Shown: positions 17,882 through 58,800 of the stretch, piece after piece | Position numbering within the stretch: position 1 is the first letter of the stretch | Layout: each line of letters begins with the position of its first letter | Program-made: the position numbers and the translations under genes | Assembly: GCF_964194025.1 (NCBI RefSeq) | Contig: NC_134470.1 | Span: 65,224,001-65,288,000, forward strand | Length of the DNA: 64,000 nt | Direction: 5' to 3' | DNA from: Convolutriloba macropyga | Lineage: Eukaryota | The notes under the pieces: generated by a model | What the model saw: the letters and a program-made list of their open reading frames with translations, nothing else | Database searches by the model: none | Told to the model about the DNA's origin: nothing

Positions 17882-17995
17882 ATGAACAAAGTTATAAAAA
17901 TTGTGCTGTGTGTGTTTGTTTCGGGATTACAGCTCACAAATGCTTATGTGGTGTCAGAGTTCGGCTATTATGGAACACAACGGATTTCTAGAGAG
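17882..17995 (+). CDS. PAL gene alternative first exon 1A, signal peptide (MNKVIKIVLCVFVSGLQLTNA-YVVSEFGYYGTQRISRE)
   Basis: ATG plus 38 open codons with a basic n-region, hydrophobic core and TNA cleavage-like site. Perfect donor GAG|GTGAGT in phase 0, compatible with the exon at 27230. Confidence 0.65.
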
Positions 17996-22525: not shown

Positions 22526-22675
22526 ATGAGTGGTAGTTATGTACCAGTGGCAGTAGTGAGTGCGTGTTTAGTACTTGTTTTACTGGCTTGTTTTTTAACT
22601 GGAGGTTTGCAACTGTCCCGAACGAAGTCTCTCGAGCAAAGCATTCCAGAGAACAAAACTGACGGCAAAGATGAG
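22526..22675 (+). CDS. PAL gene alternative first exon 1B, signal peptide/anchor (MSGSYVPVAVVSACLVLVLLACFLTGGLQLSRTKSLEQSIPENKTDGKDE)
   Basis: ATG plus 50 open codons, a long hydrophobic segment, an NKT sequon, and donor GAG|GTTTGT in phase 0. Confidence 0.65.
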
Positions 22676-27229: not shown

Positions 27230-27441
27230 ATAACGATAAATTCCTTTGAGACTAGAGGCACCAATCGAGAGTTCATTTACTGCAAGGGGTCAAAGGTCAG
27301 CTCACCCTTCCATATTAACGACATAGTTCAACACCCTGTCCCAAGGCAACGCGGAAAGGGCGCGGAAGCAGAGGAAGATGTGAACATAATTGCAGCAATC
27401 CATGTCTTCACATGTAGTGAAATCACCACCGATAAACTTGT
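27230..27441 (+). CDS. PAL gene exon 2, degenerate PHM-like N-terminal domain part 1
   Basis: Polypyrimidine tract plus CAG acceptor, donor GTAAGG, phase 0 to 2. Encodes ITINSFETRGTNREFIYCKG...VNIIAAIHVFTCSEITTDKLV. Confidence 0.8.
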
Positions 27442-29004
27442 GTAAGGATTAGTTTTTAACACTTTCATCTAAATAAGTCTCATTTGACTGACTTCAGATT
27501 TAAGATTTCTACCGCAGTTGTGGAAATATCTCAAAATTATGCAAAATGCAAAATCACCGCTGACATGCTTGTACAAAAAATTTTTCACAAGAGTCTTAAA
27601 ATAAGTAAAGTTAAATTGGTAAAATTATGCAAGATCACCGCTCAAAGGTAGATGTAGCCTTTTATAACTTTAACCGAACAAGGAGGCTCGTTAATGTGTG
27701 TTCGCACATGATGTTCCGACCCGCGCTCATCTACATTTTTGAATAAACTGTCTTTTGAATTACATTTTTGACAAAGCGATAATCAAAAGTAGATGTTTGA
27801 GTTCAAAAAAACCGTTACACAACCAAACTAATAATTGAATTAAATAATGCGATGTCTCATTACAATAATATCTGCATTGAAAAGACTACGAGAAAAAAAA
27901 CAACAACTACAAAAAAGCAAAAACAAAAAGTTTCACGTCAAAATTCAATAACTAATTTTAAAAGCACCTAGTAAAAACGTCACATTACAATTAGACAAAA
28001 TCCTAATTACACGAATTTAGTTTTTCCTAACTACACAACAGACGAGATTTTTTCTTAATGAGACTAGGTAACGATTCTACAAAAAAAAATAATTATGTGA
28101 AATTCAAAAATCAGTCAACATTTTTTAAAACGAATAATTTTAAGTCTCAAAAATCAATGGCTTTCAACGAATTAATTCTCAATAAATTTACTAAAGAGCC
28201 ATAATGAAACCAATAGGACCTGTTTTTGGTTAGACTAAGCCATTGGAACCGACTATAGATGCAAAAAAATTACAAACATTGCGAAAACACAAATTAGTGA
28301 AGCCATTAAAATCATTAGCTTTTATCTGAATTTTAAGTATTTTTATTTCAATTTCCATTTATACTAATTCAGCTAAATATATAATGAATGATTAAATAAG
28401 TTCAATTCAACCACATTTGAAAATCATTGGGATCTGTTATTACGCGATTGTGCTAAAGGAAGAGAAAAAGAAACCCAAGTACACCACTCATATAACTTTT
28501 TATGAAAACACATGCTCCAACAAACAAAACATTAGTTACGTCATAATATCAGTAAAGCTGTTAATTTTTAAAATACCTGGGACCTTTCAATGATGAGAAC
28601 ACGTTACAAGTTAATGAAAACAACAACAACAAAAACCGAAAAAATTGAAAATTCCTTAAAATCTCAAAATTGTATAATAATATAAACTTGAAGACTAATC
28701 GCTATAAACTTCTTCGTGTAAATTTATTCAATCAATCCTCACTTACAATTTTATGAGACTTGTCACCTTTTTACGGCTATCTAAAGATTAAAAACAGGCT
28801 AACACAGCAAATTAAAAAAAATGAGCGAGGAAAGTGTCGAAGCCATTAAAAAATGAACTTTTCAGTTAAAATTTTTCCAATTTCAATTAATTTCTAACAA
28901 CAATGGGATTCTTCGTTTTAACAATTTGACTGCTATAAATCAACAAACATGAACAAACACTTTAAAACAACGAAATTTTTTTGAGAAAAACCGTAGTAAC
29001 AACG

Positions 29005-30085
29005 CCATTAAATTCAATAGCCTTCAACGGGAGCTAATAAATATGCTAAGTAAGGATTAGGTGAGACAACAAAATAATGGGATGTTTGGCATTCATAACT
29101 CATCAACAAGAAATTACAAAAAGTCATTGACTGTGAAAACAACAAAAAACACAGGCAAGATCCAAAAAATTGGTAGAAAAATGCGCGAGGAGTGTCGAAG
29201 CCTTTTAAACCATAAGCTTTCCTCTGAAAACTTTTTTTATGATCCATTGAACGTCGTCATCTCTAAGCCCATGAAACTATCAACATTAGGATAATGTTTT
29301 AAGATTCCAAAAGGAACCAGAATTAAGAGAAAGAGAAATTTTTTAATTTTTAAAAAAAGTTATGAAAACTCGTGCATCGAATTCATAACACCAATAGAAA
29401 GAACATAAAACAGCTAACTAGATTAATTTTGGTTGAATTAGAAAAAAATATCCGTTCATTTTTGGGACTGACTTACAGTTTACGAACTAAGGGTTAAGAT
29501 TGTTTAATAATAAAAATTTCTCGGAAAATCACTTTTAAAGTCTTAACAGCCATTAAATCCAATAGCTTTCAACGGAAGCCAATAAATACGCTCAGTTGTC
29601 CCTCGGTTGGACAAAAAGGATATTTTTCATTCATAGGTAATCGATAAGACATCACAGCAAGTCTTATGACTATGGAAACAACAACAAATACAAGCAAAAA
29701 GAAAAAATTTATGGGGAAAGTGCGCGAAGAAAGTGTCGAAGCCGTTTAAACCATAAGCTTTTCTCTGAAAACTTTGTCCAAGATCCATTGAAAACATTCT
29801 CTAAGCTAATGGGAGATATTAATATCAGGAGAATGTGATAAGATTTCAAGAGGGACCAATAAAACGAAAAAATCCATTTTTTTTAATTTCGAAATTTTGT
29901 ATCATTGAAGTCATATAACAAATAATAAGATGATGAAACCGCTAAGCAGAATAATTTTGGTTGCAGTAGAAAATAAGGGGGTCGTGTCTTTAATGAAGTT
30001 GACCTACATTTCACGAAATTAGTTTAGGATTGGTTAATGTTAAAAAAATTCTCGGAAAACCATTTTTAAAGTCTTAACAACCATT
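29005..30085. repeat. Diverged tandem duplication, period ~545 bp (PAL intron)
   Basis: gccattaaat.caatagc.ttcaacgg.agc.aataaata at ~29005 and ~29550. The segments gtgtcgaagcc.tttaaaccataagcttt and ttctcggaaaa are repeated in register. Confidence 0.85.
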
Positions 30086-30649
30086 AGTTGTCCACTCAAA
30101 GCTCTAGATGGGTTCTCTTAATGCTCATCATGAAACCTATTGAAATTTTAGGCAATTTAGGCAAATTTTATGCCTTACCACTCCATGCCTTAGCATCCTC
30201 AAAAAAATCAAAATTTCATTTGAAATTCAGAGTCGTAGCCAAAAAAAAATACGAGTTGTTCATTGGGCTTCATTAGACTGTGAATCAAGTTTATCATTAA
30301 TTGAACCTTGGTATGAAAAGTGACTAGTCTCTATGCGACATAAGAAAACAAAAACATGATTTTTTTTTAAAAAAGAGCTCTAAAATAGAATTCGATAATT
30401 TTTTTGATAGTAAACTTCCCTATGAGATCAGAACTATTCTTTTTATCGCCTTTCGTATATTAGAAACTCAATATTGATTCTTTTTAAGGCGTGAAACGTA
30501 ATTTTGAATCAAAATATTTTATATAAAAACTATCTTAATTTGAAGAATTACACTAAGTTACACATAAATTACACTAAAAGTGAACAAAATAAGTGAACAA
30601 AATACACTATTAAAGTGAACTTCAATCGTCGATAACTCCTCGAAAAAAA

Positions 30650-30820
30650 AAGAAATTCAAAAAATTCAAAAAAATCTTTTTAATTTCGATTTCTACGCTG
30701 GACGAGCTTCTTAATGATACCACTCACAATTCTCTACGATGAATATATCGATCGGCCAAAATTGGCTGAACAAAAAAACCCATTTGAGTATATATTTCCT
30801 CCCCCCACAAGTGGGGTTGG
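30650..30820. repeat. Dispersed repeat with inverted copies at ~40820-40990 and ~14020-14170
   Basis: ctctacgatgaatatatcgatcggccaaaattg.ctgaacaaaaaa is the reverse complement of ttttgttcagtcaattttggccgatcgatatattcatcgtagag. Confidence 0.85.
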
Positions 30821-31336
30821 AACAAAAATGCGTAAGATTATAGTGCATAGCGTTGGATAAATACTATTAAACGGTGATAGTTATATTTCATAAGTGCACC
30901 GTATTTGCCTTATTCGCTGCTCTCTGGGCCTCGAAAAATCAACTCGCACCATGCGAAACTTTATTGCTTACTCTAAATGTCAGTTATACTTATGATTGAT
31001 TTAAACACGCGTTTGCCTCCATGATAAATTAATTGGTTTTGGTATTATTGTTTCTTGGTATTACAATGAGACAAATACTAGTTGTCTTAGTCGTCTGTAG
31101 AGAACTGCAATGAAACTACACTGCCCTAAAAATACTACGATACAACTGTTTTTCAACTAAAAAGCAATTTCCCAATAAATAAATCGCTGCCGCCGTAGAG
31201 ATTTCCAAAACGCTTTTGACCATTTCGGATTATATTGTTGACTTTAATTGGTCATTATCATTATACCAAAATTTGATTACACAGATTTTTAATTTTATAT
31301 TAATTCATAAACTTTTTTAATCTGTTTTTGTTTCAG

Positions 31337-31526
31337 AGAGTGCAACACGAAAGACAAGTTTGAGTCACTGTGTAAAGGCAGTGGATTGGCTGCTGTGTGG
31401 ACCCCAGACATGGTTGAGAGTGGGGTGAACAGGGTGCAACAGCCAGACACTCTCTTCACTGCAAATGCTATCATACTCAGAGTAGTCTATGATGATGTTA
31501 CTCCTGTCATCACCCCAGCCGTAGGG
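31337..31526 (+). CDS. PAL gene exon 3, degenerate PHM-like N-terminal domain part 2
   Basis: tttgtttcag acceptor, donor GTATGT, phase 2 to 0. Open frame ECNTKDKFESLCKGSGLAAVWTPD...AIILRVVYDDVTPVITPAVG. Confidence 0.82.
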
Positions 31527-32558
31527 GTATGTTAACCATAGTGATGATAGGACTCAAATCTTGCAAAATGTGATCCTCGGTTAAAATTGTTTCCTCATTC
31601 TCTGTAGTATGTTTGGATTATTTTGTACTTGGTAACGCTTGTTTTAACTCCAATCGATAGCGAACAACACTCAAGAGCAGTCTTGTACACTCTTGTACAA
31701 CAAAAACAACGAATGGGAAAATAAATAAGCCTTCCCGGACTTGAGTCGCAGAGTATTTCAGTGCTGAATCAGTATATTTCAGTAGTAAAAATCGAATTCA
31801 GTTTTGATACATTGCATATCAAGTGTCTATTAAGCTTCTTTATGCGCAGTTTCTCTTCATTATGATAATATTGAGGTCACTGAGTTCTCCCGTACAGGAA
31901 AAACAGAATGTGTTTAGACTGATTTAGCGCTGATTTACTCTACCGCCAACCCCCAGGGGTTCTACTAAGATCGCAAGCCCCGAAAAATGATTCTTCACAA
32001 TAAAATAACCTCAAAAGGGTTCCTGGCTGATTAACGTTGCCAGGGTCTATAATGCTATCACATTAATTGCACTGTTTAAATTCTTTGTTAATGCATAATA
32101 CAGAATTGACGCTATCTCGGCATTAGGAAGGTGTCCCCCCATTATGAATGAATGGAGCCACTAACAGTCTTAAACCAAAATGGTAGTTTTCAATTTTTGA
32201 GCAGCGCTACCCCAGAACAGAATCTAACTTTAATCAAATAACTTCAAATAACGTTCAAAGGAGCTTACGGTTCACAAGACCAGGCTTGGTAGAAACGTTG
32301 TCTAAAACACATGATCAAATTTTAAAATTCCAAGAGTCTGCAGCGCCAGAAGTTTCTGCATACATAGCCAGAAATGCGTGTTTCAAGCGAGAATGTGACT
32401 CCGCAGAAATGACATCAAAATTTTGGCTAGCACCACCTAGAACCACGCCGTGTTCACGATAACCGCCAGAAGTTCTCAGTGAATTCAAGTAGTCACGTAA
32501 CCTATACATGAATTTCATTGAGAGGAAATAAAATGCGGTAGAATACTTTATTTTTAAG

Positions 32559-33620
32559 GTTGAAGTGACAGAGGAAGAAAGCGTGGGCGATCAAGGCCAC
32601 TTTCTAGACCGCTCTGCTGATCATAACAAATTATTCGGATTGAAAAGCATCCAGCATGGCCTGTTGTCAATTCCTCAACCAATCATAGAGCGAGACAATT
32701 CATGGCACCTGACCTGGTCAGAGGGCAAAATCGGACAGGCTTCAGGCGTTGCAGTTCTTGACCAAGATTATGTCATAGTGTTTCACCGTGCAGAGAGATC
32801 GTGGACTGGATCCACTTTCAAGGATTTAAAGATGCAGAATATGACCAAGATCGATTCAGACACGCTTCTCAAGTGCCGAATCAGAGATGGAGAGTGCACC
32901 TCATCAATGGGGAAAGACATGTTTCTACTTCCACATGGTATCAGCGTGACTCCTGACAACAACTTCCTTCTCTTGACGGATGTTGGAAGACATCAAGTAT
33001 TTGCCCTCAGCATCGAAACTGGCGAAGTAACCTTGACGTTGGGAACCTTTGGAGTCCCAAAACAAGGCGACTACCCAGATTACTTCTGCCAACCCGCGGA
33101 CGCCGAAATGGACCCAGAAACTGGCCTGATCTTTGTTGCCGATGGTTACTGCAACTCTCGCGTGGCTATTTTTAACAATGACGGCAGTTATAATACCAGC
33201 ATTAAAGGATGTGTCAAAGATGATGACTTCCGAATTGTTCACGACTTAGCGATCGATGCCGAGAATCGAGTTCTATTCGTTGCCGACAGGGAGAACGGCC
33301 GCATTTGCATATTCAGCATTGACGTTGGACACAAGTTTGGTGAAGCTTTGGACTTGATTGAAACAGGACAGAGTACAGTGTATGCTCTGGATTACAACAT
33401 GGGCAATCTTTACTCAGCCGAGTGGGGGGCAAGAGGCAGTGCACACAAGGCATTCGGAACCATCATTCCCACGACTACTGGGAAAACAGAACAGGTGGAG
33501 CAGTTTTATGATTCCCACATGCGAGATCCACACGACATATCAGTGTGGGAGAACACGTACATATTCATGAGCGACTTAAAATCTCCCTCGAAAGTGTTCA
33601 AATTTATCAGAATGGACTAA
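32559..33620 (+). CDS. PAL: Peptidyl-alpha-hydroxyglycine alpha-amidating lyase (PAL, NHL beta-propeller), terminal exon; full protein about 525-537 aa
   Basis: tttttaag acceptor in phase 0. Contains the PAL motifs FHR, LPHG, TDVG.HQVF, FCQP, VADGYCNSR, IVHDL, VADRENGRI and PHDI, so the Zn-binding His residues and catalytic Tyr/Arg are present. Stop at 33618-33620, no C-terminal TM. Confidence 0.95.
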   Translation, partial: VEVTEEESVGDQGHFLDRSADHNKLFGLKSIQHGLLSIPQPIIERDNSWHLTWSEGKIGQASGVAVLDQDYVIVFHRAERSWTGSTFKDLKMQNMTKIDSDTLLKCRIRDGECTSSMGKDMFLLPHGISVTPDNNFLLLTDVGRHQVFALSIETGEVTLTLGTFGVPKQGDYPDYFCQPADAEMDPETGLIFVADGYCNSRVAIFNNDGSYNTSIKGCVKDDDFRIVHDLAIDAENRVLFVADRENGRICIFSIDVGHKFGEALDLIETGQSTVYALDYNMGNLYSAEWGARGSAHKAFGTIIPTTTGKTEQVEQFYDSHMRDPHDISVWENTYIFMSDLKSPSKVFKFIRMD

Positions 33621-39039: not shown

Positions 39040-39174
39040 CTACTTTCTATAACGATAAGCTACAATTTAGCTGCTCCATGATTATAACTACTGAGTTTGA
39101 ACATTTGGTAGGTTTATAGCATTTTTAACATTTTCAATGATTTTGTCAAAATGCAAAAGTAGACAAAAGCAAAC

Positions 39175-40152
39175 CTGTAACTTTTCACCTAACTCGTCAA
39201 TGTACTCAATATCCAACTCATGTAACGTTTCGATATGGTCATTTACAAATGCAATTGGAACCAGCATGATATTCTTTTTGCCCAGTTTCGCCAAACCTTC
39301 AATAGCTTCATCAGTTTGAGGTCCCAGCCACGTTTGAGGTCCAACTTTCGACTGCCAAACTAGACGATAATGATTTGAAAAATCTAGTTCTTTCATTGTA
39401 TCCCATACTGTAGCGGCAACTTCGGCTGGATATGTGTCGCCACGAAATGCAACACTAATCGGCAGAGAATGAGCCGAGAACAAGATTACAACTTCGTCTC
39501 GTTTGTTCTCGGGAAACTGCATTAGACACTCTCGTATCGAATCGGCGAAACCTCTTACAAGTTTCGGATGCGTCGGCCATCGATCTATCACTGACCATTT
39601 GAGTTTCTGAGATACTGAAAAAGGATCATCGTCCGGTTTTCTACACATGCTCAAATAGTGTCTATAAACTGCATTTAGATTTGATCCAGTAGTTGAACAA
39701 GAGTACTGTGGGTATTGAGTAAATGCAATTGCATGTTCGATTCCATCGTTTTCCATTTCAACTATTGAGTCTTCGACTAAAGGGTCGACATAACGAAAAC
39801 CGATGTAAAACTTATGCGGCGCCGAAATCGGGCTAATTTTGTCCAGCATCTGGACCATTGCCTTTCCTTGGGTTTCCGTCCACTCTTTAATTGGAGATCC
39901 TCCTCCTATTTCCGCGTACTTTTTCTGAATCTCCGGAGTCCTCCTTTTGGCTATGAGTGGACCCAAATATTTCTGGAGCGGACCCAACGGAATCAGATCC
40001 TTGTCTCGGAACAATCTCGTCAAAAACAAGTTCACCTCGTCAACAGTTGCCGGCCCTCCCATGTTCAGCATCAAAATGCCAGTTTTGGGTTTGGCCGAGG
40101 CACTTGCACACATCAGACGCCGAGAGATTAATGACGCCCAATTCAGCTTCAT
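39175..40152 (-). CDS. FECH: Ferrochelatase (mitochondrial), first coding exon
   Basis: Motifs [55 protein letters not shown] and [10 protein letters not shown]. The ATG at 40152 lies 2 nt after a tttttcag acceptor. Donor CAG|GTTTG, phase 0. Confidence 0.96.
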
Positions 40153-43100
40153 ATCTGAAAAACAGAAACAAATTTTTGAAAAGGACACATGAAATCAGAA
40201 GCAATCAAATAATCTTCCTGAACTCCCTCCTTTCCGCTCCGTATATACTATGTAAATCTGTGTTATGTTCATGTATGACTAGAGCGCGGACAAAATTAAT
40301 TCCTTCTTTCTGTTCTGTAGTAGCGAAAAAAATCAGAGACTGGAAAAAATAATGAAGTTACGTGACACAAAATGTATTGCCCATAGCCTTTGCACTCTAT
40401 TGACACCAGTGAAACGAGCCCGGGTTGACCACCACAAATAAATCTTGGCAACCATATCCAAGCCAAATATGGTGACCAAAAACTTGGCAAAAATATACCT
40501 GACCAAACAAAATTTCACAATTATTTGAAAGTAGCCGCCCAATATACAGTTTCAATTACCCTAGCTAACCATGAAAATTTATAAATTGATTTCTTTTGAC
40601 AGTAACAAACGCGGCTTGTTAAAAACAGTGAACAGGGTACTTGAAAGAGCCATTTAATCGTACTATGAGAAATATTCGAGAGTTTTGAAATCCTTTTGAA
40701 TTCACAATATAAGTTGATAGATAGATTAACTCAAAAATATAACACAAAAAGAAAAAAAACAAGAAAAAACAATTTGGCGAAAAAAATCCCAATGCTTTAA
40801 TTCTTCCGACCCCTCTTGAGGGGGAAGGAACTATATACTCAAACGGGTTTTTTTTTGTTCAGTCAATTTTGGCCGATCGATATATTCATCGTAGAGAGTT
40901 GAGACAGTATCATTAGAAAGCTTGTCCAGCGTAGAATATGGAATTAAAGAGATTTTTTTAATTTTCGTTTTTTACAGGGAGTTATCGAGGTTTAAATTTT
41001 GAGAAAATAGTGTGAATCCCGGCGAGATTTTATTCACTTTTTCCGGAATTTTTGAATAAAACTTCGCCAATTTTGCTAAAATTTGTTAATTTTTTTTAAA
41101 AGTGTTGTTGATTTTTATTTGTAAAAACAAAAAAAAATCAAAAAGAATATTGTAGGCTATTTTTATTATTTTTTTGTCAAAATTCCTGCTAAATATTTCA
41201 AAATTAAGACTTTTTCTTCAAAAACAGCACGAAATAAGTTTCTTTAGTCCATTTTGATTAAACTTACAGGAAGTACAGACCCAAACACCACAAACACAAT
41301 TTTGGTAGACTCAAAAGGGGGATTTCTTTAGCTTTTTTACATCAAATTCCGTTGAGAGTGCTCTGTAGTTAAAACATTGCCGTTTTTTGCTAAATTTATT
41401 CGTTGATTAACAAAAACGCAGCATTGATTTTTGATTTTTTAACTAACAAAAAATCAATATCTAAAACATTCAAATAATTAAGTGTTCTTAAAGAACAAAC
41501 AGCATTAGCAGGGCTAGTTTTTGACATATCTTGGACTGGTATAATCCAAAAATAATTCGGATTGTAAACAGTCGATCTTTTTTTTAAAAAAATTCGATCT
41601 CTTCTACAGTAATTAAATAACAGAACATTTCAAAAAAGCTCACTAATAATCCTTCCAATTGGGTTCCTAATTAGCACCACTTTATTGTATCTAGTTGATC
41701 ACTTGAAAGCTTATGGTCGTTTTGACTTTTAAAAGTATTTGATTTTCAAATAAATAATGACTTTCTGAACTTTTGCCTCTATTTTTCTCTTTTTGGTCAG
41801 CATGTAGCTTATTGTCCGCAATGAACGAATGCTTCTTCTTTCTACTGAAATCAAATTCAATCTTTATTGCGGTTTTACGCCTTAAGTTATAGCTACAGGC
41901 TTTGATACAACTAGATTTCAAATTTTCTTAATCTTTTAGGTATTTGCTCATTTTTCACGTTTTCTAGTTTTGTCACATTATCACGTTATTGACAATTCAT
42001 ATATCACATTATTGGCTTTCAAAATAAAACACAATTGATATTATTAAATTGTTTGAAGATATAGAGTATGATTTCAACGGCTTCGACACTACTTTCTCGA
42101 ATAATTTAATTGATTTTTTTAAATTGTCTTTATCTGCCGTTTTTACTTTATCTTTTTTTTGGTCGCATAAAATTCTTTTGTACAATGACCCGGTTTCATT
42201 GCCTTTTCATGTAAAAATAGATGAGAAGATTTTCTGATTTTAGTAAATAGCTGATAGCTTTCATGACTCTGAAAACAATTGTTTTCCAAACTAAAAAAAA
42301 AAAAACATTTTTTAACTTTGCAATTCTTTTCCCTTTATTGTCTGTTTGTTATCTAGTCTCTTTAATTACAGGCCAATTATGACATTATTGTTGTCAAAGG
42401 AAGGTTTCAAAATGGATTAGTGTCACACAATCTATTGTTTTTGAAGAGTTCATTTACTTTACTGGCTTCGATACGAAAAAAAAAGTAAATTATTTTTGAT
42501 TTTTGTCATGTTTGACGTTCTTTTTGTAGACATAAGACATATTCTGGATAATTGAAATTCTCATAGGCTTCTTGAGGAGGAATATACGAACCTAATTAAT
42601 TTTTTAATTCTGTAATTAACGGCGTTCATGTCTTTGGAAATATTTTTTTTCGAAAAAAATTTAAAATGTTACATATTTTTGCATTTTGTTTTCCAATTTT
42701 ATCTACTTGTTACCTTGCTTCATTAATGAGAGGTCACATAACATTGGTGGTTAAAGAGGGTGCAATTGGACACATTTTGATGGCCATAGTACGGCTTTAC
42801 GGTTTCGAAAGCGTTTTCTGCCATGTTTTATTTGATTTTTTGGTTGTTGCTTATATGTTCTTTTTGTAATCGCGTAAAAAAATGAATACCGGCAGCTCTT
42901 AATTCCTTCAATAGAAGTATTGGTAATCGTACACCTATGAGATATTTTATTTGATTTCTAATGGTTTTAATTATTTCAGTTAATTGTTTAAAAAAAATAA
43001 GCGAATTTTTCACCTTCGCTGTTTTTGTTCTTTATTGTCTAATTGTTACCAAGCCTTTTTATTGACCACTCCCTTATCTTTTCTGTTGCATTACAACTTA

Positions 43101-46631: not shown

Positions 46632-47027
46632 TTAGTCTCCTGCGTATATTATCATGAAACACATCACTCCGAATCCAAGCAATAATGAGGCCACCTTCTG
46701 CATTCGCCATCGACTACAGTTGAACTCAAGAGGGAGCACCTCGAAGAAAGTGATGTACAGAAAGGTTCCAGTCGCGAGGCCCTGCAATACGGTACTGAGT
46801 CCCAGAACGAATAGACCCTGTTCCTGTGACACAATGATTCCGATGGCAATTCCAATGGGCGATGCAGCTGCGAATCCCAAGACAGAAAAGAAGGTCTCTT
46901 TTAAGGACATGTTGCTCTGGACAACACTCATACCCAGACTGAATGCCAGCACCGATTTGTGGACTATTAGGGCTCCGAACAGCTGGAACACTTTGCTGGC
47001 GGTGCCCTCCAAACCCACGGCAAGTCC
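46632..47027 (-). CDS. ZIP1/2/3-like zinc transporter last exon (TM4-TM8); total 367 aa
   Basis: tttttag acceptor. Splicing restores the HSVFE-GLAVG signature. Also contains HKSVLAFSLG, SPIGIAIG and GLATGTFLYITFFEVL. Stop TAA. Confidence 0.95.
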   Translation of the reverse strand, partial: GLAVGLEGTASKVFQLFGALIVHKSVLAFSLGMSVVQSNMSLKETFFSVLGFAAASPIGIAIGIIVSQEQGLFVLGLSTVLQGLATGTFLYITFFEVLPLEFNCSRWRMQKVASLLLGFGVMCFMIIYAGD

Positions 47028-55262: not shown

Positions 55263-55755
55263 CTGCAGGAATAATTTCATTTATGTTGTTGGTTTGATTA
55301 AATCAATTGTGTATCAGTGAACAATTGTGTATTTGTTATCAAGATTTTCCACCACGTAATCGCAATTTGCTTGCTCAAAACCTGACCGTTCCAGTGTCAA
55401 ATCTTCTCTTATCTCGAAATTCAATTCTACTAGGCAAAAGGCATTTCAATCCAATCAAATTTCATTGCCGTTTCGAATTCCTATTTTGTTGATCAAGAGT
55501 AGGAACGGTCAGAGAAATCTTAATTGCACGTCTCGCTTCACCATTTTTGAGGACGTAAAGTCAAATGGCCAGATGAAAAAGATGGGTAGCTCAAAAAATT
55601 GCTCTAAAACACCAACAGGACTAATATAATTGCTTCAAACTTCGTTTTGAGAGCAACTTATTACTGCGAATTTGAAGGAGGGCTGGGTGCTCATTGAAAA
55701 AAAAGTTCAAAAGCAATACAGTGGAAAATAAACAGCGGAATCTTATGATACTTAC

Positions 55756-55897
55756 TTGTTCAAAGAACTCTTCGAAGTCTTCAGTGACATCGACTAGAAG
55801 ATCCAACAGACACGTGGCTAAGAAGACTCCTCCTCCAAAAGTACCCGCGAGAGACACAAACAACTTCCTGTTCTTCTTTGACACGTGATAGAATTTT
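55756..55897 (-). CDS. ZIP zinc transporter exon 2 (TM2)
   Basis: ttttgcag acceptor, GTAAGT donor. Encodes FGGGVFLATCLLDLL, as in ZIP1/ZIP3. Confidence 0.92.
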
Positions 55898-58800
55898 CTG
55901 CAAAATAAAAAATCGCTGTTACATTTTATCTTTGCCTGCGTGTTTCCCCAAGCCTTCCGACATTGAGATGAAAGCCAACATAAAGCCATACCTCGAGGAA
56001 CTCTTGTCTATAAAGAAAAACATACAAAGTTATGCAAATTTCTGAAAATGAAAAACTATGCAAATTTGAATAGTATTTTCAATTTTCAGAAACAAAACTG
56101 CTCAACACAATGCGGGAGTTCTGAGAGATCCATGATATTGTTTCATCTTCACAGTTAAAGTTGCAATATGCGATTTCAAATGATGTAGTAAAGAACTAAC
56201 TTTGGCAATTTTGATCTACCTTGGTGCTGAAAAAAGTATTTGCGTGTTTTATTTTTCTCTCAAATTCTAAATTTCTGACATTTTCCTTTAAGTTTCTAGA
56301 CGTCCCTTCATTTCAAAAAATCAGCTCGTTTCTAAAGAAACAAATGAAGTGAAATATGATGTCCTGCCTTTCTAAATGCAAGACATGGTCATGAAAAAAG
56401 ATGGCCAGTAAAAAAACAGCACGAGCAAACTAAATCTTCATCTCTCTGAAGCAGTGAAAATAAAATTTTTATCGAAATCAACACAGTGACGTCAAATAAA
56501 CGATCTCAAATGAAAGTTGGTATCACCCTAAAATCCAAACAGCACTAGTTTAAAAAAAAACAAGATTGAAAAGTGATATCTCAGCGCACCAACTTGTAAA
56601 TGTCACTAAATTTTTCCCAATTGTGGCAAAAAATATTCAATCTCCAATCTTTCTTGCACTCTGCCCCAGTATAATTAGTAGAATTTCAGTAACGCTTTGG
56701 CAGCTTTACTGAAAACATTTATTGCTTAATTGCCACCACTTCAGAGAAGCTGATCCAAATCTGAGTAAAAAAAATGACCACTATTCACGGCAATGCTTCT
56801 CATATAAGGTGTAGTGTAATCCAGAAAACGCGTTGCACCAGTGCACTGACGGAAAATCTTGTCTCTTTATATCGCCATTTCATCTGAACGCTGAAGTGTC
56901 GCGCGGTTCAGCTGATTCTATTGGGAATTTTCTGCTGATTCTATCTCAAATATCTCAAGCATTGAAAAATTCAATTTTATTACAAAATTTTAAAATTCGA
57001 CAAAATCACAAGTCTGGATATTTTCCGAGGAATTCTCCAGATAGCAGATCCCAGATTTTAAAAAACCCTATTTGTATTCTTTTATTGAAAGTTTTTGAAG
57101 GCATCACAGGCTAAAAAACTTGGAATCTTGGTAAAAAAAACTCTGCGTCGATAATTCAAATTGATACAAAACATCAAGTTTTTCTGCTTTAGGACGTTAG
57201 GGTGACAATTGTTCTTCGCCTCAATTAACTTTGGCAAATTCTTAGCTCGTTCACTATTTTGTTCCACTTTCCAACCTGAGGATTTTTTGCTCATCTTTCT
57301 AGTTTCTCATATTTTTTCTCTTTTTTCAAATATAAAGTTAAAAGCAACTGTATTTTGTTGTCATAATAACAATAACCGCAATAACTTCGTAGAACTGCAG
57401 TCTAAAAAAGAAAGTAAAAAAACAGACCAAAAAGAAACTATTCTTTTCATTAAGGGCTGAGATTTTAGATTTTTTATTAAGAATCTGTATAACTTACGCA
57501 ATTCAGTTGAAAAAGCATGGATGAATGAACAAAAAGCAGATTTGAAGTGATTGTCATGTCATATAGTCATAACGAAAATCTTGACAAAATTTAAGAAAAA
57601 CCAAGAGAAGGCCTCAGCTATTGCTTCTCGGCTATTAAAAACAAACAAATTATAAATCAATTACAAAAGATCTCAATTCGTTGCCAGATTGATAATAAAA
57701 CTCTTCTTGGCAAAAAAAAGATACATATAAATTCGGAAGTGTAATGTTGCCTGAAAATACTGATTTGATTAGCAACTCAGCCAATTCCACGCTAGTGAAA
57801 ACTAATGTCACGCACTTTCAGTAATATTCCAGTTGGACGTGTTCTATGCATTAAAAAATGTTTCCTGATTTTTCGCTGCTTATCTTGCTTTTTGTTATAG
57901 TAATTCAAAGTCACCTAGCTTTCTCCAACGGTCATTAAAATCTGAATTGGTTAACGGCTCATTATTGGGGCTCTTCTAACTAATTCAAATCAAAGTGTCA
58001 ATTTAAAAAAAAGTTAGTACATTATTGCAGAACTAAAAAAGTTTTGTCATTTTTTGTTGTTGTACTTTTTGGGGGCAGCATAGTTTTCCCAAAAATTTTG
58101 TTTGCGTTAATATGTTGATTTTGACAGCACCTATTTGGTTTTGAGCACGTCAGTTTCCAGAAAATCAGCAGTTCTTCGATAACTTCTTGCCATTTTTTTT
58201 TAATTTTGAATTTTCTATTGTTGTTTGAGCTATCTCTTTATCTCCTACGACCAATCCGTTTTATGATAATTTTCGAGATAATTGTTCTGTATTTATTAAC
58301 TATACATAATGTTTTGAAGCAAAAAATCAAGAAGCCTGCTGTTTGTGTCTTGTTCTTCAAGTCTTACTCATTATTCTTGTCAATTTCATACGTTATGAGC
58401 TCAAGAGGTCAAAAAATTTATAAGCTAGGGGCTCCCTCTATGCAGATTTCTATAGCACAAATTTTGACACCGACAAGACCTTGACACCACCAAGATCTAT
58501 CGAATATTCGGTATTTTTCGAACATGAATTTTATTCTACGATTTAATTTTTTCACTGCCTATGCTGACTTCCTTTATGTTAAATCAGAAATTTTCGTTTT
58601 TGCATTACTTTATATTTTAAAATGTAAATTTATTTTCCTGAGGATTTGTTGAACTGTTTTTGTCTGTTTAACTGATTATGTTCAAACGGCCTGCCAGTTA
58701 GGTAAAGCAAATATTACTTTTTCTTCAATCCTTGAAATCTATTTCAGGTTTTGTCGTGTTGTTTTTTCATTGAAACTCAATAATTCAAAGCCTTGTGGGC

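Follow-up and report, generated by a model that had tools for sequence, protein, structure and literature searches.

The window examined here, 64,000 nt of AT-rich animal DNA from the acoel Convolutriloba macropyga, carries a gene with two isoforms that RefSeq names pgal-1, the name of a protein with PAL only. We describe this gene and its product, in which an apparently competent lyase is preceded by a domain that very probably descends from the N-terminal, CuH half of PHM and that is predicted to have lost its catalytic function. Peptide amidation is carried out by a single enzyme family, to which both PHM and PAL, and the bifunctional PAM that joins them, belong.

The gene and its predicted product

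Exons 2, 3 and 4 (Table 1) splice into a single open frame that ends with a TAA codon at 33618-33620. Preceded by one or the other of two first coding exons, they rebuild the two RefSeq proteins, XP_075241253.1 (P0001, isoform X2, 525 amino acids) and XP_075241252.1 (P0126, isoform X1, 537 amino acids), with identity at every residue. The signal-peptide exon is the sole difference between the isoforms, P0126 matching P0001 fully from exon 2 on, and no extra exons are present in either of them. All splice junctions are canonical, with the acceptors ...TTCCAG|, ...TTTCAG| and ...TTTAAG| and the donors |GTAAGG and |GTATGT. An initial annotation of this DNA, made from the sequence alone, had proposed that exons 2 and 3 encode a PHM-like N-domain in frame with PAL. 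The frame is as proposed: the two exons code for 134 amino acids that run on in one open frame to the TAA, in exact agreement with RefSeq, and the motifs quoted at the time (EFIYCKG, NIIAAIHVFTC, LVEC-(9)-C, GLAAVW, IILRVVY and AVGVEVT) are all found in the spliced translation. A small correction concerns exon 2, which starts at 27230 in phase 0.

The product is predicted to be a secreted, soluble protein made of a signal peptide, an N-domain of ~140 residues, a linker of ~45 amino acids and PAL. It was likewise borne out that the CuM half of PHM, the membrane span and the cytosolic tail are lacking. The PHM C-domain (CuM, PF03712) is absent from both isoforms, and tblastn with proteins containing both the N- and C-domains of PHM detected no relic of it across the 64 kb at E<5, the PAL exon being the only match. 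Hydropathy analysis found no sufficiently hydrophobic 19-residue window for a membrane span apart from the signal peptides, and the stop codon directly follows the propeller, which leaves no cytosolic tail.

The PAL part is readily recognised. Pfam finds NHL in three stretches on exon 4 (2.7e-18), and the best non-acoel matches of the PAL protein are PAM and PAL proteins, at 1e-37 and weaker. For a comparison of residues, vertebrate PAM fragments and hemichordate, cestode, nematode, mite and bivalve proteins were aligned with the Convolutriloba protein using MAFFT. In rat numbering, and following the crystal structure of rat PALcc, we take H585, H690 and H786 to be the zinc ligands, Y654, R533 and R706 to be catalytic and D787 to belong to the calcium site; the rat disulfides are C634-C655 and C702-C713. 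The equivalents of all seven of these metal-site and catalytic residues are conserved in P0001 and in the acoel-type orthologues, by which we mean the relatives (among them P0002, P0004, P0006 and P0121) that form one clade with the Convolutriloba protein in the PAL tree. The alignment columns FHR, LPHG, DGYCN, VHDL, ADREN and PHD are likewise present in P0001 and all of these orthologues, as are the equivalents of the C634/C655 pair. The position of C702 is occupied by Phe in all six acoel-type PALs (P0001-P0006; ~33270-33310 in the window), and a Cys sits one residue before the C713 position, so that the second PAL disulfide has probably been lost in this clade. The claim that all PAL catalytic motifs are kept thus holds for the catalytic and metal-binding residues, and one disulfide has to be subtracted from the picture. 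The active site is apparently competent and lyase activity can be predicted from it.

Table 1. Coding exons of the C. macropyga PAL gene, in positions of the window
Feature	Position	Strand	Contents	Basis
First coding exon, isoform X2 (38 aa)	17882..17995	+	Signal peptide and start of N-domain strand 1	tblastn with P0001; exact rebuild of P0001; donor GTGAGT
Alternative first coding exon, isoform X1 (50 aa)	22526..22675	+	Strongly hydrophobic signal peptide	Open reading frame list; exact rebuild of P0126; hydropathy
Exon 2	27230..27441	+	First half of PHM-N-like beta-sandwich: C56; insert ~73-90, poorly modelled; strand IIAAIHVFTC with AA at the PHM H107/H108 positions; C100	Spliced frame; tblastn; exact rebuild; AlphaFold model; hhalign local register
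Exon 3	31337..31526	+	Second half of PHM-N-like domain: C111, C121, W130; LRVVY with V159 at the PHM H172 position	Spliced frame; tblastn; exact rebuild; three MAFFT modes
Exon 4	32559..33620	+	Last N-domain strand (VEVT), ~45-aa linker, complete six-bladed NHL propeller PAL, stop	Pfam NHL; conserved PAL residues; hydropathy

Intron 2 (3.9 kb) contains units of ~530-540 bp arranged head to tail at 28850-30100 of the window, with segment pairs that are 77-91% identical at spacings of 528-541 bp.

Fold, copper ligands and conservation of the N-domain

The initial annotation identified exons 2 and 3 with the N-domain of PHM by eye and proposed that this be checked by comparing an AlphaFold model with known structures. 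We built two AlphaFold2 models: model 1 from P0001 (residues 22-185; predicted local distance difference test, pLDDT, 80.2; predicted template-modelling score, pTM, 0.75), which is an all-beta sandwich, and a replicate, model 2, from the N-domain of P0004 (pLDDT 80.4). When model 1 was compared with the PDB using Foldseek, ranks 1-23 were all rat PHM (E from 6e-4, probability 1.00, query template-modelling (TM) score 0.43-0.57), with human DBH soon after. Alignment of Foldseek's top candidates with VIA-align gave PHM a Z of 11.2, with 124 residues at 2.9 A and model positions 10-160 lying on the CuH domain of PHM (58-197); DBH 208-356 reached 9.2, and a phage cement protein, the highest-scoring of the unrelated chains, 8.2. 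Run independently of Foldseek, a search over 48,161 representative chains returned PHM at 10.7 and 10.5, the CuH domain of DBH at 9.2 and unrelated chains at no more than 8.2. Among the Swiss-Prot models of the AlphaFold DB, the top matches were N-domains: those of PHM and PAM from C. elegans, of MOXD and DBH, and of PAM from vertebrates (such as rat PAM 60-194).

Model 2 gave the same picture. The Foldseek-independent search placed PHM at Z 11.7 and 11.4, DBH at 8.2 and the best unrelated chain at 8.1; PAM and PHM held eight of the nine top ranks in Swiss-Prot (TM 0.57-0.63), and the two top clusters in the ESM Atlas were arthropod PHM (0.66) and vertebrate PAM (0.64). PHM or PAM thus ranks first across four structure libraries and two models, and PHM 58-197 is the top PDB match of each model, whether or not the search relied on Foldseek. 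As judged from these models, the fold match is specific, spans the whole CuH domain and repeats across libraries, and it supports at the level of the fold what had been proposed from the letters.

The copper ligands themselves are gone. In PHM, CuH is held by H107, H108 and H172, and alanine at any single one of these positions inactivates the enzyme (PMC6123673). A lone local hhalign alignment, which is non-significant, sets IIAAIHVFTC under SVHHIILSGC, the register of the initial annotation. In this register, and with equal spacing (six residues from A94 to C100, as from H108 to C114), P0001 and P0002 have AA at the HH position, and the other orthologue group has VQ or VK there. LRVVY, or LRVKY in the other group, is aligned with MEVHY/LMVHY in all three MAFFT modes, which places V (V159 in P0001) or K at H172. 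No register puts a conserved His at the HH strand; His is altogether lacking from the P0002 and P0004 N-domains, and P0001 has three, none of them conserved. The four cysteines of the N-domain keep the spacing x-11-10 in 4/4 sequences, which fits the PHM pairs C81-C126 and C114-C131 in the same register, as a match of spacing rather than of disulfide geometry. No counterpart Cys of the C47-C186 disulfide was found in the N-domain. Two of the three disulfides of the PHM N-domain are probably kept. The earlier proposal that the four cysteines are retained while HH becomes AA and VHY becomes VVY stands for the conserved spacing, for AA in the hhalign register and for V159 in the three MAFFT modes, and is less firm at the HH strand, where the register changes in one of these modes (see below). 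Lacking the three CuH histidines and the entire CuM domain, the protein is predicted to be unable to hydroxylate.

This predicted pseudo-domain is conserved across two deep groups of acoel-type orthologues. The N-domains of P0001 and P0004 are 24% identical, and the residues conserved among the orthologues (the cysteines, LRVxY and P-x-V) look core-like. For P0001 against P0002, PAL has a nonsynonymous divergence (dN) of 0.25 and the N-domain one of 0.43. P0004 is encoded on L002, a contig of 2652 nt from the Logan assembly of SRR19327882, P0121 on the genomic contig L003, and P0006 is a fragment. The N-domains of P0121 and P0004 differ with a dN of 0.129 and a synonymous divergence (dS) of 0.737, a dN/dS of 0.175 over 108 codons. 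This ratio, whose measurement against orthologues the initial annotation had called for, points to purifying selection on a domain that would be unable to catalyse. The domain order is also seen in transcripts: in L002 and in L001 (2159 nt, from JGI sample 3300008998), signal peptide, N-domain and PAL lie in one unbroken open reading frame (ORF), and because the Convolutriloba gene has introns there, these contiguous ORFs indicate spliced mRNAs of the same domain order. In L001, the sequence ahead of the called start specifies a signal peptide as well as YVSSQFEYYG, a segment that resembles that of Convolutriloba isoform X2; the N-terminus reads YVSSQFEYYGARE.

Some further observations concern these contigs and searches. 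At L003:3001-3504 the N-domain is encoded from its first Cys on without the intron that separates exons 2 and 3 in Convolutriloba, and a retroelement-like ORF (DUF1759) lies just downstream of it. The end of L002 (2627-2652) is an Illumina adapter (AGATCGGAAGAGC...), an assembly artefact outside the ORF. A word-seeded homologue search with the N-domain alone returned only the query itself. Pfam matches of the N-domain to DUF3377, AGH and AsnC were at chance level, and two HMMER matches, P0122 (repetitive, probably bacterial) and P0123 (low-complexity), were discarded as spurious.

Hemichordate counterparts and other members of the PAM family

Hemichordates encode 'PAM B-like' proteins of ~590 amino acids that share with the acoel protein a PHM N-domain followed by a linker, here acidic, and PAL, with no Cu2_monoox_C and with the HH pair lost. 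The Saccoglossus kowalevskii protein (P0023, XP_002736199.1, 589 amino acids; also deposited separately as GenBank ALR88639.1) matches Pfam Cu2_monooxygen N above the cut-off (4e-10) and then NHL, without Cu2_monoox_C. Its orthologues in Glandiceps talaboti and Ptychodera flava (XP_070542218.1), P0124 and P0125, are 66-68% identical in the N-domain. The hemichordate proteins differ from the acoel protein in that PF01082 is recognised, in Saccoglossus and Glandiceps (in the latter from precomputed domains), and in that the equivalent of H172 is retained; the H107/H108 pair reads NR or DR in 3/3 hemichordates. A half-PHM depleted of ligands and joined to PAL is thus conserved across three acorn-worm genera, in a form less decayed than that of the acoels. 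BLASTP of the P0001 and P0004 N-domains against that of Saccoglossus gave no significant match.

We found no further Cys-rich N-extensions among the other 119 PAL-containing matches, outside the acoel-type proteins, the hemichordates and true PAMs, in a homologue search whose length window excluded full-length PAMs; the same window applies to the PAL tree. In this tree the acoel-type and hemichordate clades are not joined. An approximately unbiased (AU) test did not reject a joint clade of acoel and hemichordate PALs (p 0.187), a result to be read with the long acoel branch and the absence of full-length PAMs from the sample. One could imagine that a dead CuH half-PHM joined to PAL is an ancient and required architecture of Xenambulacraria, inherited by common descent, in which the pseudo-domain is an obligatory non-catalytic partner that, for instance, docks a separate PHM to PAL. 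We regard this scenario as improbable.

Comparison with the known forms of the family sets the acoel protein apart. With bifunctional PAM it shares the order of signal peptide, PHM N-fold, linker and PAL, the zinc and catalytic residues of PAL and an N-domain model that fits PHM 58-197, but it lacks the CuH histidines, the CuM domain, the transmembrane and cytosolic domains and the C47-C186 and C702-C713 disulfides. Like the stand-alone PALs (C. elegans pgal-1, insect PAL1/PAL2 and mollusc pgal-1), whose name RefSeq gives it, it is a PAL without hydroxylase; in the stand-alone PALs sampled, however, the propeller follows soon after the signal peptide or after a Cys-poor extension, whereas the acoel-type proteins have a four-Cys PHM-N-like domain in this place. 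The closest laboratory parallels are the PHM mutants H107A, H108A and H172A (PDB 6ALV, 6AO6 and 6AMP), which also carry a non-ligand residue at CuH positions and which fold although they are inactive (PMC6123673); these mutant structures are among the top structural matches of model 1. The mutants are single-site laboratory changes in a complete two-domain enzyme, while the acoel protein, natural and under selection, has lost all three ligands together with CuM. A 2019 review lists membrane PAM, soluble PHM+PAL, PHM-only and PAL-only proteins as forms of the family, with no half-PHM form (PMC6529398), and we found no description of an acoel PAM or of the half-PHM architecture in the literature searched. 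The combination of half-PHM and PAL is therefore a variant architecture of the PAM family that is undescribed in that literature; the gene itself was already annotated, as PAL only. For annotation, this calls for some caution, as Pfam detects only the NHL repeats in the acoel protein.

Origin and role of the N-domain, and neighbouring genes

Taken together, we consider it very probable that the acoel protein is a soluble PAL of the secretory pathway with a non-catalytic pseudo-half-PHM as its N-domain, and that this domain is a highly diverged descendant of the CuH domain of PHM. Because the profile and HMM tests are negative, homology with PHM rests on the fold, the place of the domain ahead of PAL, the cysteine pattern and the hemichordate intermediate. 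Several results weigh against this reading. The profile searches proposed in the initial annotation gave no link of the N-domain to Cu2_monooxygen in Pfam, HMMER or hhalign: PF01082 did not match even at E<=10, be it with exons 2 and 3 singly or with entire N-domains, from three full orthologues and the P0006 fragment; HMMER, run as an exhaustive profile search over 1.84 billion representative proteins, returned the orthologues P0002, P0121 and P0006 and two spurious matches, with no PHM; and hhalign against a small PHM-N alignment gave a non-significant probability of 0.1%. A sequence profile of the N-domain had no match at E<=10 among PDB chain sequences, and a feature search of the ESM Atlas was uninformative (scores <=0.70). 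At the structural level, the margin of PHM over generic jelly rolls is only ~2.5-3.5 Z units, and both models were built from one shared, shallow alignment of seven rows. The residue equivalences come from sequence registers rather than from a printed superposition, and the global mode of MAFFT gives another register at the HH strand, with TT under HH. As for PAL, its activity is predicted from sequence, and the acoel clade sits on a long stem of 1.68 changes per column.

These points bear most directly on the possibility that PAL gained as its N-domain, independently of PHM, a disulfide-bonded jelly-roll or beta-sandwich of other ancestry, whose resemblance to CuH is one of analogy. Every sequence and profile test is negative, as this would predict, and generic jelly rolls score Z 7-8 against the same models; on the other hand, PHM/PAM rank first in four libraries with two models and over the entire CuH domain (58-197), the N-domain occupies, with respect to PAL, the very place that PHM has in PAM, the A94-to-C100 spacing equals that of H108 to C114, and hemichordates have a Pfam-recognisable version of the architecture. 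We therefore think such a convergence improbable. If the domain does derive from PHM, exon shuffling could have fused part of a PHM-only gene with a PAL-only one, in which case no bifunctional ancestor would have been truncated. In many animals PHM and PAL are encoded by distinct genes (PMC6529398) and the acoel PAL does not group with vertebrate PAM in the PAL tree, but this tree is dominated by the acoel stem (1.68) and includes no full-length PAMs, so that it decides nothing, and the order of PHM part, linker and PAL is exactly that of PAM. Fusion is in our view unlikely, and truncation of a bifunctional PAM is the origin that we infer.

Under the reading that we favour, of a PHM-derived but non-catalytic domain, a separately encoded PHM would make peptidyl-alpha-hydroxyglycine, which the acoel PAL would most likely convert to amidated peptide and glyoxylate, and the half-PHM would be retained by purifying selection as a non-catalytic module. 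That the domain still binds metal or does redox chemistry via non-canonical ligands is hardly credible: H96 of P0001 does lie two residues past the H108 position on the same strand, but it is Glu in P0002, P0004 and P0121, the N-domains of P0002 and P0004 have no His at all, and the CuM domain, which holds substrate and O2, is absent. Substrate recognition by the N-domain, one of the roles first suggested for it, is improbable, given that in PHM the peptide is bound chiefly by the CuM domain. A role in sorting, suggested at the same time, finds no support: in a study of AtT-20 cells, every one of the soluble monofunctional PAM proteins is reported to have entered the regulated granules (PMC2289459). 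More serious is the idea that the domain was kept specifically to dock a separate PHM, or a protein like the PHM C-domain, and so couple the hydroxylation and lyase steps. Purifying selection on a non-catalytic domain would fit such a function, as would the established packing of the N- and C-domains of PHM against each other (for the interdomain arrangement, see PMC6123673); yet no partner has been identified, and the residues conserved in the acoel-type orthologues look like core residues. Docking is thus doubtful, and less likely than a structural role for the module in the folding, stability or secretory-pathway handling of PAL, which is our tentative best guess, with functions of some other kind accounting for what these two leave.

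The conservation of a CuH domain without ligands suggests that this domain has a function of its own apart from catalysis. This fits experimental hints of non-catalytic roles of PAM: in atrial myocytes, proANP storage is restored by PAM1/M314I, which is inactive (bioRxiv 10.1101/2020.03.08.982777). The acoel protein may be seen as a natural construct with which to ask what the PHM N-domain does beyond electron transfer.

Two other genes were noted in the window. A ferrochelatase gene, with a large exon at 39088-40188 on the minus strand (Pfam PF00762, 4.6e-93), lies convergently to the PAL gene, facing its 3' end. A metal transporter of the ZIP family is represented by two exons on the minus strand ~9 kb apart, at 46632-47018 (PF02535, 2.1e-23) and at 55621-55989 (3e-05, below the Pfam cut-off).

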